From Octopus sinensis (Eukaryota), in contig NC_043017.1 in assembly GCF_006345805.1 (NCBI RefSeq), positions 1,488,001 through 1,552,000 of the forward strand: a stretch of DNA of 64,000 nucleotides, in the 5' to 3' direction. Position 1 is the stretch's first letter. Every line of letters starts with the position of its first letter. The translations under genes and the position numbers were made by a program. Positions 40,785-62,689 of this stretch are shown here, piece after piece. The notes under the pieces are model-generated. The model worked only from the letters and a program-made list of their open reading frames with translations, ran no database searches and was not told the origin of the DNA.

Positions 40785-41142
40785 AAAAGGGTAATAATAT
40801 AGATTACTACCAGTGGCCCGGCACAAAAGACGAATTAGTCATTAGACAAACTATTATCAATATAGAAAAATATTATTCATGTACAAATATAATTAAGGGC
40901 TCCTAAATAAGGACGCCATGTGCTAGGGACACAAAAAGGGATAATTTATCGAAAGTGAAAATCAAAAATATTTACCAATAACGATACATCCCGGACTGAT
41001 ATCAGTTTCTACCTCTTTCTAGCAAAACAGACAGAATATGTTTGCTAAGGCCGGTTTCATCAGCGAGACGCCTGAGTTACATCGAGATGCGCAGCGCTTT
41101 AGACCATGTGTTGATCTAAACAACTTGCAGATCTTAACTTTA
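40785..41142 (-). mobile_element. Hammerhead-bearing non-coding element in TA/TG microsatellite
   Basis: A unique island of about 350 bp between simple repeats, containing the hammerhead at 40986-41071. The sense strand has GCCCTTAATTATAT at 40900-40887 and CCCTTTT at 40791-40785. The left boundary is uncertain. Confidence 0.6.
40986..41071 (-). ncRNA. Type I hammerhead ribozyme with extended stem II
   Basis: The minus strand reads GCGTCTCG-CTGATGA-A-ACC...TTAGCAAACA(loop)TGTTTTGCTAG...GGT-A-GAAA-CTGATATCAG-TC-CGGGATGT. Stem I is 8 bp with G.U pairs, stem III is the perfect 12-nt palindrome ACTGATATCAGT, and the cleavage triplet is GUC. Positions 10.1/11.1 are an A.A mismatch. Confidence 0.8.
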
Positions 41143-41229
41143 TATATATATATATATATATATATATATATATATATATATATATATAGAGAGAGAGAGA
41201 GAGAGAGAGAGAGAGAGAGAGAGAGTTGA

Positions 41230-41365
41230 TACATGGACACACTAGAAGTGGATGACATATATTGATACGCTGAGGACAAACACTGGTCTCTGGAAGTCGC
41301 AGGGCATGGCAGCGATGATGACGCACATGGACTACTGGGAAGACTGTATGGAAGACTGTATGGCA
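41230..41365 (+). mobile_element. RTE/RTEX-like LINE 3' tail fragment
   Basis: TYIDTLRTNTGL....MAAMM..MDYW resembles the TYIDxLxxDTG...MxDRxxW C-terminus of RTE-group LINEs. Confidence 0.55.
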
Positions 41366-41384
41366 ATGCGAGAGTACAATGCTC

Positions 41385-42570
41385 CGATCACCACTGGTAT
41401 CACTCTCACATTACCCTCTCGCATTCCGTGCAGTCTTGCCATTTCCTCTTTCAATTCGGTGCACTTTGTTGTTTATTTTTTCAAACTCTTTCCTAACATC
41501 TTTCATGTCATTTGGTATGGTTACATCAATGATCTGACCCTATGTAACTCCCTTATACAATGTGATAATATTCGGCCGATGGTGTTCAATTACACGATCC
41601 GTCTGAAAATCATAGTCCCCAGTTCTCTGTTACTTCATATTGATATTTACGGCATAAGAGCCAATGAAGATACACGTACACTTTGCCGTGGCGGCGCTTG
41701 TATTCTTTTTGTGCAAGGCTCTCACATCCAATTACCAAGTGGGTCACATTTTCCACACTCTTTCCACAGAGTCTGCATTTCTGGGTGTCAGAAGTTTTAT
41801 AGATGTTATACTTCACTTAATTAGTAGCAAGAGCCTGGTCTTATGGAGCAATAATCAGGTTTTCGGTGGTACGCTTCAATTCACCTCCCTCACACCATGC
41901 CCACGAAGCTGTGTTATCGTTAACGTCTTGTGCATTCCTTTCAAACTGTCCATGCATTTTCATTTCAAGAAGATCTTCTTTTCTCTTCTCCTCAGCTCTT
42001 TGGTTAAACTCTTCCTCGTCCATCATTTCATCTGCATTTACATTAATATCTTTCACAACATATTGCAGCAGCTCTTCATCACTATCTATCAAATACTCGG
42101 CAAGCGTTCTCCTTTCACTCCTTATACAATGGTCTATGCTAACTAGTCCTCTGCTACCATTCTTTCTTTTCATATCCAGTCTGTTTATGTTTGCTTTAGG
42201 GTGTAGCGCCCCATAGAGCGTCATTAACTTTCTCGTCCTTCTATCCAGTGTTGATATTCCTCCTAAGTCTATTTGAGGATGGACGCACTATATCTGACCA
42301 CAGCAACTGCCCAGATATTCATTGCAGTAATCAAATATTTGTCATTCAGCTTGGATTTCAACACCATCTTCACCCTTTTTTGATACGCCTCACTGTCCTT
42401 GACTTTCATTTCTTTGTGTAGAAAGTCATCCAGCTCCAAAATCCTTAAATGTTTATATCCACTACCGTCGGCTTCTCTCCTGATTCTTCTGCAGGATGAT
42501 TTCTTCACTCTTTTCACAATATGTACTGAGTATTTGGTAATCCCAAATTCCATACTGATTTCCATACCAC
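41385..42570 (-). mobile_element. Decayed R4/Dong-like non-LTR retrotransposon, 3' part (late RT, CCHC knuckle, restriction-like endonuclease)
   Basis: Frameshifted segments include GYKHLRILE, AMNIWAVAVVRYSA, ALHPKANINRLDMKRKNGSRGLVSI, KCRLCGKSVENVTHLVIGC..LAQKEYKRRH, DYDFQTDRVIEHHRPNI..IIDVTIP and VIPVVIGAL. These are typical of RLE-clade R4/Dong/Rex6 elements. Confidence 0.9.
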
Positions 42571-44267
42571 ACTTCTGAACTGTTAAGGACTCTGGGTTAA
42601 GGATTCTATCTGTTTTTCGGATTTCCTAAACAATTTCGGGTTATCCATAAACAGCATATGGTCCAATGATGGGCGCCTTTCTTCCCACATATGGTATATT
42701 TATATCTTTCAAAAACTCATTTTTCTGGAGCATCTTTTCTTTGAAATATTCTAAAAGCTTCTTTATGAAACCTATTCTTAAGTTGATTTGACGCAATTCT
42801 TGTCTCATTGAAGCTACACCGAACTCTTTACCGAAGACAATTCCACGGGATGAAGTGAGGCTATAAGAGAAAGTTGGGACAGCTATGGACACAGTAAGGT
42901 AGGTAAATACAATTTTTTGTATATATGCATGTCTGTATGTGACGATGCCAGAATATGTAAATATTTCATACTGAGCGTTCCCACTTGAGTAGAAGCAATC
43001 GCGTACAGATACTCTGTAACGGAATTGCTGTCATCAATCTTTAAACGTGTTCTTATTATTATAAAGGTTTCGACAATATTCAGGGGTTATGTCAGCAAAC
43101 AGTCCAAGGATTATATCTTATTTCTGAGGACTATATTATCAAATTCGCTCTCCGTTTTGTTGCTTTTTCTAATAGATTAACCTACAACCCAGAAGCTAAC
43201 TTATTAATTCATTGAGTCTTGCAGGTCTGAAATCCTTTCATCAGATTAGTGAAATTTGAGATACGTTTTAATGGAATCCTGAAATATTATGATTACGGTG
43301 TCAGAAATTAAGCAAACTAAATATTACACGCAATTTATCGATCAGCAGAAATTCCATTTATAATTACGAAGAAGGACACGCCATCATATCTTTTCATTTT
43401 TATCATTAACTTCGACAGAAGATATATATTGACAAAATGTTAACGTGTTTCATATAATATGAACATGATGTAGGAGGAGAAAGTGAGATAATGAGGGTGA
43501 GTATGAGGTAGACGATAACAAAGGGAGAAAAGGAAGAGAGGCAGAAAGAGGATGTATAATTGGACGAACGTTATTGAAATGTGGGTGGTTATATGTGGAT
43601 ATATAAAATTCAGTATATATGAGGAAAGTTTATATTCGAATTGAATAAAAACTACGAGAGAAAAGCCGAGAAAATATCATATTTATATGCAATTTCCAAA
43701 GTTTGTTATAGAGAATAAATATACATTATTCATACACACACACATGCATGCATGTATATATAAATTATATCATTTAACGATATTTATACACACACACATA
43801 CACACACACACATATATATATATATGTGTGTGTGTGTGTGTGTGTGTGTGTAAATATATCTATTATTATGTGTGTCTGTGTGTATGTATCTATGTATATA
43901 TATATAATATAAACACGGTTTATTAAATAAATAAATAGGTTTTAGAAATAAATAATATATCAAATAAGTATATAATGTACGTTTCTATAGAGGTGTTTGA
44001 ATGTATGTTTATGCTGTACACACAACGTTTGTTTAAAGACAGAAACTTTAAGTCTGTCAATTCGATTAAATGCTGGCATTTCATCCACATTTACATTCGC
44101 ATGTACATATATACATACATATATATATAAAGACATATATATATATATATATATATTTAATAAACATATACATATATACATGCATATATAATATATATAC
44201 ACACGCATATATATATACATATATATATATATACACAATATATATATATATATATATATATATATAT

Positions 44268-60800: not shown

Positions 60801-60863
60801 GTTATTTGAGAACGTACGTTTCAAGATTAGTCAAACTCGACATTTCTATCATCAGCTCAGAAC
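60801..60863 (-). ncRNA. Atypical minimal type I hammerhead ribozyme, copy 1 of 3
   Basis: The minus strand reads GTTCTGAG-CTGATGA-T-AGA-AAT-GTC(GAGTTT)GAC-TAA-TCT-T-GAAAC-GTAC-GT-T-CTCAAATAAC. Stem I is TGAG/CTCA plus distal GTT/AAC, and stem III lies in the palindrome AACGTACGTT. The triplet is GUU and 10.1/11.1 is U.U. Confidence 0.6.
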
Positions 60864-61353
60864 TCCCTGGTTTGGATTTGAAAACACTGAAAGTGGAGCA
60901 TACCCTTTCGGTTTCTTATCGCTTCTGAAGATCTGCTCGTAACTAACAGTGCCAACAAACTCAAAAATGCAAGCGAAGAATTTCTGCTCTCCCCTTTCCA
61001 CCAGCGTGGGTTAAAATCAGTAAACACTATGCTTTTTTCGGTAAAATCCGAGGCATTATATAGAGAGAGATGAATTATAATTTCAACATTGAGGGTAAAA
61101 TTAATTAATTAATCAATTTCACCAAGTATTCAGTATGCAAAGGGACCATTTAAGGCGAATTCAAATTATTACATTATATAAAAGGGCTTAGTAAAATAAT
61201 TACTTTGCCGCATACTGAACTCATTAGAAATAGCAGCTAAAAAAACTTTTTAAACTATTTCTAATACTTAAAGAAAACCTCTCTCATATAGTGTTTGCTC
61301 AATTCAACTCACGAAAATATGGGGGTAGAGACATTAAAAAATCAAGTGCAAAG

Positions 61354-61416
61354 GTTATTTGAGAACGTACGTTTCAAGATTAGTCAAACTCGACATTTCT
61401 ATCATCAGCTCAGAAC
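61354..61416 (-). ncRNA. Atypical minimal type I hammerhead ribozyme, copy 2 of 3
   Basis: Identical to 60801-60863, in the next monomer of the tandem array. Confidence 0.6.
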
Positions 61417-61909
61417 TCCCTAGTTTGGATTTGAAAACAATGAAAGTGGGAGCATACCCTTTCGGCTTCTTATCGCTTCTGAAGATCTGCTCGTAACTAA
61501 CAGTGCCAACAAACTCAAAAATGCAAGCGAAGAATTTCTGCTCTCCCCTTTCCACCAGCGTGGTTAAAATCAGTAAACACTATGCTTTTTTCGGTAAAAT
61601 CCGAGGCATTATATAGAGAGAGATGAATTATAATTTCAACAATTGAGGGTAAAATTAATTAATTAATCAATTCACCAAGTATTCAGTATGCAAAGGGACC
61701 ATTTAAGGCGAATTCAAATTATTACATTATATAAAAGGGCTTAGTAAAATAAATTACTTTGCCGCATACTGAACTCATTAGAAATAGCAGCTAAAAAAAC
61801 TTTTTTAAAACTATTTCTAATACTTAAAGAAAACCTCTCTCATATAGTGTTTGCTCAATTCAACTCACGAAAATATGGGGGTAGAGACATTAAAAAATCA
61901 AGTGCAAAG

Positions 61910-61972
61910 GTTATTTGAGAACGTACGTTTCAAGATTAGTCAAACTCGACATTTCTATCATCAGCTCAGAAC
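61910..61972 (-). ncRNA. Atypical minimal type I hammerhead ribozyme, copy 3 of 3
   Basis: Identical to 60801-60863, in the 5'-truncated third monomer. Confidence 0.6.
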
Positions 61973-62689
61973 TCCCTGGTTTGGATTTGAAAACACTGAA
62001 AGTGGGAGCATACCCTTTCGGCTTCTTATCGCTTCTGAAGATTGTTGAAATATATATATATATATATATATTATATATATATATATATAAATAGGGAAAG
62101 TGAGAGTAAGAGATAGAATAGTTGATAGATATATATATATATATAATATATATATTTACTAAGCCCTAATTATATAATATATATATATATATATATATAT
62201 ATATATATATTATATATATATATATATATATCAGTAGACGGATAGATAGCTACATACATTAATAAATAAGTAGAGAGGTGGATAGCAAAAAGGAGAAAGA
62301 AAGAAATATAGATAGATAGATAGTTCTCCTGATTTAGAACAGGTGTTCGTAGGAATTCCTCGCACGCAAGATAGCAGGTGCGTGCAAGTGTACTTGGTTT
62401 CTACTGTCTTCTTGGAATATGGCTAGACGTTAACTGTCACAGGAAACAGAATGTCATTACTAGGAAACAATGACGGGCGTCTAACATCTGGTCGCGTAGT
62501 AGGAATAGAGAAAAAAACACAGACATAACCATACACACGATTGCTCATAATGATGCGTATATATATATATATATATACATAAATAAACGGAGAGACATTT
62601 ATATATATATTTATATAGATATATATATATATATATATATATATATTATTAAGAGAGAGAGAGAGAGAGAGATCTACGTGGAAATGGAT

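Follow-up and report, generated by a model that had tools for sequence, protein, structure and literature searches.

The 64-kb stretch of DNA analysed here (the window, by which the whole stretch is meant) contains three short non-coding elements, E1, E2 and E3, which carry hammerhead ribozyme motifs and lie next to TA microsatellites. This raises the question whether they are retroelements and, if so, of which kind. We consider it likely that they represent three sequence-unrelated families of short non-coding hammerhead retroelements, of the kind described as metazoan retrozymes without long terminal repeats (non-LTR retrozymes) or as associated with Penelope-like elements. This assignment is supported because the hammerheads occur above chance, the E3 array has an exact 3′ end, E2 and E3 have inverted truncated copies, the element ends abut TA arrays, E2 and E3 share a 3′ module, and the RNAs are predicted to be self-paired. 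It is the best-supported reading at the sequence level, and with it the core of the original prediction, a set of non-autonomous, tandemly arranged hammerhead retroelements that insert into (TA)n and probably use one shared enzyme, is upheld. The system itself belongs to a described class and is not a new kind (PMC7229834, PMC4209133, PMC8557442 and bioRxiv 10.64898/2026.07.22.740005).

Hammerhead motifs and predicted RNA folds

The window was searched with a descriptor for type I hammerheads, which consists of CUGANGA, a stem II of at least 3 bp (a mismatch at 10.1/11.1 being tolerated), GAAA, a stem III of at least 4 bp including the A15.1-U16.1 pair, H17, and a stem I of at least 4 bp. There are exactly five matches, all within E1, E2 and E3 and thus at the very places where a type I hammerhead had been predicted in each of three non-coding elements. 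When the window was shuffled 300 times with its dinucleotides preserved, the descriptor found 0.02 matches on average and never more than one. That three independent families should combine one architecture with different stem sequences is far beyond chance. A stricter descriptor for minimal hammerheads (stem II of at least 4 bp) matched E2 alone and found no additional motif. The five matches are:

40986-41071, minus strand: E1 type I hammerhead, with a stem I of 8 bp, A.A at 10.1/11.1, a long stem II, stem III ACUGAUAUCAGU and H17 = C
44819-44866, plus strand: E2 type I hammerhead, with stems I/II/III of 7/4/5 bp and H17 = A
61916-61968, minus strand: E3 hammerhead copy 1, predicted cleavage 3′ of U at 61920
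61360-61412, minus strand: E3 hammerhead copy 2, predicted cleavage 3′ of U at 61364
60807-60859, minus strand: E3 hammerhead copy 3, predicted cleavage 3′ of U at 60811

With the cut marked by a slash, the E1 hammerhead reads GCGUCUCG-CUGAUGA-(47-nt helix II)-GAA-ACUGAUAUCAGU-C/CGGGAUGU, with predicted cleavage 3′ of C at 40994. The E2 hammerhead is AGGCCUG-CUGAUGA-GUAC(GUAA)GUAU-GAA-AUCA(CUG)UGAU-A/CAGGUCU, where stem II is GUAC/GUAU with loop GUAA, stem III is AUCA(CUG)UGAU and cleavage is predicted 3′ of A at 44859. The three E3 copies are identical and have the layout UGAG-CUGAUGA-(26-nt helix II)-GAA-ACGUACGU-U/CUCA, with a stem I of 4 bp, U.U at 10.1/11.1, stem III ACGUACGU and H17 = U.

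All five copies have CUGAUGA, GAAA, the A-U closing pair and C, A or U at H17, and so contain the type I core (C3 U4 G5 A6 N7 G8 A9, G12 A13 A14, A15.1-U16.1, H17 not G). They also have the type I topology of three helices with helix I open, the stems I/II/III having 7/4/5 bp in E2, 8/3+/6 bp in E1 and 4/3+/4 bp in E3. Between the families the core nucleotides are constant while the sequences of all three stems vary. Helix II is long and interrupted in E1 and E3. As for the short palindromic stem III that had been predicted for each element, those of E1 (12 nt) and E3 (8 nt) are perfectly palindromic, and that of E2 has palindromic arms on either side of a central U. The 10.1/11.1 pair, which closes helix II, is G.U in E2, while E1 and E3 have the mismatches A.A and U.U. 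These mismatches weaken the fit to the canonical motif but leave room for a variant type, since an unpaired nucleotide has been reported at the start of helix II in hammerheads of Penelope-like elements (PMC4209133). In the Penelope-associated variants of the same study helix II is large, helix I is short and helix III is small and palindromic; these variants are thought to act as dimers, and pairs of such hammerheads on opposite strands are described as well.

Predicted RNA folds were compared with those of shuffled sequences. The linear E3 monomer, from cut site to cut site, has a minimum free energy (MFE) of -144.3 kcal/mol (shuffles -115.5 +/- 5.5, z = -5.2). When folded as circles, E2 has z = -6.5 (antisense -2.7) and E3 has z = -4.75 (antisense -4.1), so that the fold excess is strand-biased in E2. 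Both monomer RNAs are thus predicted to be highly self-paired, as is characteristic of retrozymes. For 30 control windows of 500 nt the median z is near 0, and 29 of the 30 have a z of at least -3.6. The outlier (z = -27) contains a near-perfect foldback at 26963-27176 with 89-nt arms that are 99% complementary and a 36-nt spacer, which may be a miniature inverted-repeat transposable element or a hairpin element.

Copy architecture, TA flanks and 3′ ends

The elements and their flanking TA arrays are the following (arrays are given without strand):

40886-41140, minus strand: E1, single copy, the 5′ end of which abuts (TA)24
41141-41188: (TA)24 array directly next to the E1 5′ end; beyond it comes (AG)19 (41188-41225)
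44107-44268: imperfect (AT)n, left flank of the E2 composite, from the scan for tandem repeats and TA arrays
44264-44532, minus strand: E2 inverted partial dimer, joined head-to-head to the forward copy, its outer end abutting (AT)n
44530-45009, plus strand: E2 forward copy, one full unit of 480 nt, terminating in GCCCTCTATATAT before (TA)n
45003-45108: (TA)n on the right (3′) side of E2, giving way to (ATAG/ATGG)n, which extends to 45223
60594-60624: (TA)n at the 3′ end of the E3 array, from the same scan
60619-62042, minus strand: E3 head-to-tail array, 2.55 units of 554-557 bp
62050-62231: (AT)n upstream of the E3 array, containing the inverted 3′ fragment and a 40-nt non-TA segment
62155-62178, plus strand: inverted, extremely 5′-truncated E3 3′ terminus TTTACTAAGCCCTAATTATATAAT, 24 nt, with (TA)n on both sides

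The three units cannot be aligned with each other, as had been claimed (best blastn E-value at least 0.19; local-alignment P = 0.34-0.77 against shuffles). Two pairs of elements had been proposed to share the words ATTTTTTA(A)ATGTCT and AATGACTAATT. The words are present, but at chance level, and they were not accepted as evidence of common descent, since shuffled sequences align locally with equal scores; AATGACTAATT moreover falls beyond the proposed 3′ end of E1. The E2 and E3 units have 33-34% GC and open reading frames (ORFs) of at most 66 aa from a start codon. No Pfam domain was found in the element ORFs, and the translated ORF that spans the E3 hammerhead has no homologue. They are thus short, non-coding, low-GC units (480 and 554-557 bp) without LTR, as expected of retrozymes; a primer binding site and a polypurine tract were not searched for. 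An origin as tRNA-derived short interspersed elements (SINEs) was considered and is without support, the window containing no tRNA genes.

The first E3 copy is 5′-truncated, beginning at unit position 250, and is followed by two full units of 554 and 557 bp. The copies are 98.2-99.4% identical with an invariant hammerhead, and the last unit terminates exactly in GCCCTTTTATATA, straight into (TA)n. Head-to-tail junctions through TATATA, predicted for two of the elements, were found twice in E3 and once in the inverted partial dimer of E2. This latter piece comprises, in its own sense, unit positions 338-480, the TATATA junction and unit positions 1-132; it spans a unit junction and therefore its template exceeded one unit. 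The inverted repeats of E2 extend over 147 nt (I1, 98%) and 136 nt (I3, 98%). Head-to-tail repetition with one hammerhead per unit, the hallmark of retrozymes, is thus present in E3 (2.55 units, 3 hammerheads) and represented by a unit junction in E2, while E1 is a single copy.

Inverted 5′-truncated copies adjoin the forward copies in both E2 and E3. In E3 the inverted copy is TTTACTAAGCCCTAATTATATAAT, which repeats just the last two dozen bases of the unit on the opposite strand, within the (AT)n upstream of the array. The 12-mer TTACTAAGCCCT has 4 occurrences in the window where 0.24 are expected. This 24-nt fragment looks like an abortive, extremely 5′-truncated insertion or a twin-priming product. 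The 40-nt non-TA segment AATAGGGAAAGTGAGAGTAAGAGATAGAATAGTTGATAGA is found at 62090-62129, between the start of the E3 array and the inverted 3′ fragment; Penelope-like elements are reported to carry a 'tail' of 30-40 bp at one insertion end (PMC8557442).

There are 162 pure (TA)n arrays with at least five repeats in the window, which cover 5.5% of the bases, and about 8% of the window positions have such an array within 6-10 nt. Of the six element ends, five are at most 8 nt away from one, the start of the E3 array being 8 nt from the (AT)n at 62050-62231. The exception is the 3′ side of E1. The TA flanks claimed for all three elements are therefore present on both sides of E2 and E3 and on the 5′ side of E1, but not on its 3′ side. 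The microsatellite load of the whole window is very high; other examples are a (TTA)n of about 500 bp at 56066-56583 and (ATAG/ATGG)n at 45086-45223.

The GCCCT motif that had been predicted about 100-190 nt 3′ of the cleavage site is located 93 nt (E1), 137 nt (E2) and 179 nt (E3) from it. GCCCT occurs 37 times on the two strands of the window, and just two of 324 oriented TA arrays have it within 14 nt upstream; these are the ends of E2 and E3. When the terminal 55 nt of the elements are folded, an upstream GGC pairs with the GCC of GCCCU, and together they clamp a hairpin, the inner stem of which differs by family. In all three elements the clamped hairpin is followed by CU, U or C, and UAUAUA. 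The modules are:

40886-40917, minus strand: E1 3′ module, hairpin GGCGUCCUUAUUUAGGAGCC followed by CUUAAUUAUAU; GGC-G-UCCU...AGGA-GCC/CUUAAUUAUAU
44957-45009, plus strand: E2 3′ module, a 23-nt repeat GGCAUGUAUGUAUAAUGCC present twice, with CUCUAUAUAU after the second copy; GGCAU...AUGCC/CUCUAUAUAU
60619-60654, minus strand: E3 3′ module, hairpin GGCAAAGUAAUUUAUUUUACUAAGCC followed by CUUUUAUAUA; GGC-AA-AGUAA...UUACU-AA-GCC/CUUUUAUAUA

This module forms the 3′ end of E2 and E3 and is assumed to do so in E1. For E1 we placed the 3′ end at GCCCTTAATTATAT, near 40886, as E2 and E3 suggest by analogy; with no second copy in the window the boundary is deduced from the shared module only, and E1 could instead reach to about 40790. 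The E2 module has an MFE of -19.4 kcal/mol (z = -4.6), and the E3 module recurs at both internal unit junctions. A descriptor of the clamped hairpin is passed by 18 of the 633 GCC sites in the window (2.8%), 10 of which belong to E1 and E3 when both strands are counted; the hairpin of E2 is shorter and fails the descriptor.

We tentatively propose, as a possibility that we hold to be less than even, that the three families share a cis-acting module (GGC...GCC hairpin, CU, (UA)n) to which one (TA)n-specific retrotransposition enzyme might bind, and at which it might prime, when it acts on hammerhead RNA in circular or multimeric form. If this is true, the module would be the first defined recognition element for animal retrozyme mobilisation, and the autonomous partner would be identified as an element of the same genome that ends in it. 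An orphan CTTGCCCTTTTATAT at 59406-59420 (minus strand) runs into a TA/CA-type microsatellite and contains the word GCCCTTTTATAT as at the E3 end, but it lacks an upstream hammerhead; possibly it is what remains of the 3′ end of a related element.

A proposed cycle and its alternatives

The cycle that we propose follows a published model and joins the observed motifs, copy architecture, TA flanks, shared 3′ module and RNA fold excess to putative steps of cleavage, circularisation and priming and to a presumed enzyme. A tandem or read-through copy would be transcribed and the type I hammerheads would cut the RNA to unit-length pieces. They might do so as dimers between neighbouring copies, which is suggested because helix III is weak and palindromic. 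The pieces would be closed by a cellular RNA ligase, each giving a highly self-paired circle. A (TA)n microsatellite would then be nicked by a trans-acting enzyme with reverse transcriptase (RT) and endonuclease activity, most likely from a Penelope-like element, so that the TA 3′-OH of the nicked DNA could pair with the UAUAUA tract beyond the GGC...GCC hairpin and CU. Reverse transcription would make one or more passes around the circle or along a multimer. Copies made by such a cycle would end exactly at GCCCU-(UA)n on the 3′ side and be truncated to varying extents at the 5′ end; they would include head-to-tail arrays and inverted 5′-truncated partners. The cycle would account for what the window shows: exact 3′ and variable 5′ ends, one product of 1.0 and one of 2.55 units, an abortive copy of 24 nt, and inverted partners.

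Several observations weigh against an assignment to retrozyme-like families. The window contains no Penelope-like ORF (telomerase-like RT plus GIY-YIG), and a Pfam scan of the translated neighbouring regions found nothing. No copies of E1, E2 or E3 occur elsewhere in the window; the exact hammerhead words of E2 and E3 were not found in a metagenome collection, nor was that of E1 in viral contigs. E1 has just one copy, a TA array on one side but not on the other, and a linear fold z of about -2. The mismatches at 10.1/11.1 in E1 and E3 and the short stem I of E3 (just 4 bp) have to be added. In a search of the whole window with Rfam no hammerhead model reached its gathering threshold, and at E-values up to 10 over 40-63 kb just microsatellite look-alikes of microRNA families were reported. 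In short searches the type I and HH9 models align full-length to E1 and E2 with weak scores: Hammerhead_1 scores 18.0 bits against E1 (E = 0.045, 131-nt search; gathering score 34) and Hammerhead_HH9 scores 16.6 bits against E2 (E = 0.09, 161-nt search; gathering score 52). E3 has no Rfam hammerhead match even in a 111-nt search, so that none of the motifs attains the gathering score of RF00163, RF02275 or their relatives, and this check of the original prediction was negative. MFE folds of the isolated motifs do not yield a full hammerhead, which we take to reflect the weak helix III. Finally, the 3′ module was noticed after the fact and is a lead, not a result.

Some of these points would also be expected if the elements were just local duplications or small satellites in a microsatellite-rich region, with hammerhead-like motifs that arose by chance and TA flanks that result from the density of TA arrays. 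The share of the window that such arrays cover, the unmet Rfam thresholds and the failure to find outside copies in the metagenome and viral contig collections or via homologues of the E3 ORF agree with this. We nevertheless regard such an origin as highly improbable: three independent motifs were found where 0.02 are expected, all of them inside repeats, the elements share a terminal module, the 3′ end of E3 has an inverted copy, the element ends abut TA arrays far more often than the expected 8% or so, and the fold excess of E2 is strand-biased.

Two other explanations accept the hammerheads and place the elements differently. They may be remnants of autonomous Penelope-like elements, i.e. 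solo or truncated pseudo-LTRs with the coding part lost or never copied, and not dedicated retrozyme families. The E1 and E3 hammerheads resemble the Penelope-like variants, in which helix II is long, helix I short and helix III palindromic (PMC4209133); heavy 5′ truncation and partial tandems with inverted copies are known of Penelope-like elements (PMC8557442), and E1 is a single short copy. However, the 2.55 units of E3 (554-557 bp each) have nothing coding between their hammerheads, and the unit-to-unit junction of E2 is at 480 bp, whereas the unit expected of a truncated autonomous element is about 3 kb; no RT or GIY-YIG sequence was found nearby. We therefore think it unlikely that the elements are such remnants. 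The other explanation is that they are SINE-like partners of a long interspersed element (LINE) which is not Penelope-like and recognises a 3′ stem-loop with a microsatellite tail, while the hammerhead just processes the transcript. Stringent LINE/SINE pairs (e.g. UnaL2/UnaSINE1) do rely for recognition on a 3′ hairpin with a short repeat tail behind it, and LINE-like fragments are located upstream of E1 (41.3-43.0 kb) and of E3 (RT fragment at 62759-63046) on the same strand. Yet the autonomous element ending in GCCCT-(TA)n that had been envisaged is not among the LINE fragments of the window, and the fragment beside E1 loses its homology at about 41376, as judged by eye against the copy at 50.6-51.6 kb. 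Multi-unit arrays with adjacent inverted 5′-truncated copies are a signature of Penelope-like elements (PMC8557442), and it is with these that type I hammerheads co-occur (PMC7229834 and bioRxiv 10.64898/2026.07.22.740005). A LINE partner thus appears quite improbable to us, and retrozyme-like families remain our preferred interpretation.

The LINE-like sequences are degenerate coding remnants at 41250-43030, 50590-51580 and 62759-63046, all on the minus strand, with the C-terminal motif IPVVIGAL and an RT fragment with FGKAFEKADYGL. They have no Pfam match, and their closest database proteins are 37-40% identical; one LINE-like ORF that was looked up has no database record of its own. One locus with a relative of the LINE-like ORF was inspected and set aside as unrelated, being without a hammerhead. 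Other repeats in the window are a frameshifted fragment resembling a mariner/Tc1 transposase at 58206-58582 (minus strand, PYSPDLAPADF, judged by eye) and a SINE-like dispersed repeat of about 150 nt at 47474-47552, 53991-54141, 55227-55628 and 59666-59816 (plus strand) and at 58571-58699 (minus strand), the copies of which are 68-92% identical, one locus being a 183-bp tandem of 2.1 copies. The region 30000-34000 has a strong GC skew (+0.43 to +0.63) and an AT skew and is an AG/CT-rich low-complexity stretch.

Comparison with known systems

Classical hammerhead satellites, such as newt satellite 2, Schistosoma Sm-alpha and cave-cricket pDo500, form long arrays or reach a very high copy number, whereas the elements described here are short insertions with defined ends in microsatellites. 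Non-LTR retrotransposons that target microsatellites (R4/Dong, Waldo, Mino, Kibi/Koshi), together with UnaL2, which has a stringent LINE/SINE 3′ stem-loop, resemble our elements in being inserted into a simple repeat that matches their own 3′ tail and in having a 3′ hairpin beside the tail as the likely recognition site. They differ in that they are not known to carry hammerheads or to give tandem or inverted composite insertions.

The similarity to Penelope-like elements is closer. Their hammerheads (PMC4209133) share the long interrupted helix II and the small palindromic helix III with E1 and E3, and the short helix I with E3. Their insertions show 5′ truncation, partial tandems and an inverted 5′-truncated copy beside the 5′ end, and a bias for insertion into (TA)n has been reported for Naiads and proposed for Neptune (PMC8557442). 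E2 and E3, with their TA flanks, display this insertion signature. A difference is that there is no RT/GIY-YIG ORF between or near the repeats of the window. Naiads, for which the (TA)n bias is documented, are without canonical hammerheads.

Metazoan non-LTR retrozymes are AT-rich non-coding tandem repeats with a type I hammerhead, which are expressed as highly self-paired circular RNA molecules (Cervera & de la Pena 2020, PMC7229834; review PMC7761336), and they are derivatives of Penelope-like elements according to a preprint (bioRxiv 10.64898/2026.07.22.740005). Our elements agree with them in the type I hammerhead per unit of an AT-rich, non-coding head-to-tail repeat, in the weak palindromic helix III that suggests dimeric cleavage, in the self-paired monomer RNA, and in the species-specific unit sequence. 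The units first described have 170-400 nt, while those found here have 480 and 554-557 bp, but the range of 51-972 bp given in the 2026 preprint takes them in (bioRxiv 10.64898/2026.07.22.740005). The arrays of the window are short (1 to 2.55 units). An exact 3′ end at hairpin-GCCCU-(UA)n with a TA array as target was not found by term searches of PMC7229834 and PMC7761336 or in the Results of the preprint. In the papers searched, no description was found that connects hammerheads or retrozymes with cephalopods; should the host be a cephalopod, the three families would fill a taxonomic gap.

The copying of animal retrozymes back into DNA has so far been deduced mostly from their co-occurrence with Penelope-like elements. 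The loci described here show insertion products with readable ends, namely an exact 3′ terminus, variable 5′ truncation, multi-unit arrays, inverted partners and TA flanks, and this pattern provides a testable priming model as well as a sequence tag with which the autonomous partner can be sought. Within a class that is already described, what deserves to be followed up is the module shared at the 3′ ends and the model of TA priming.

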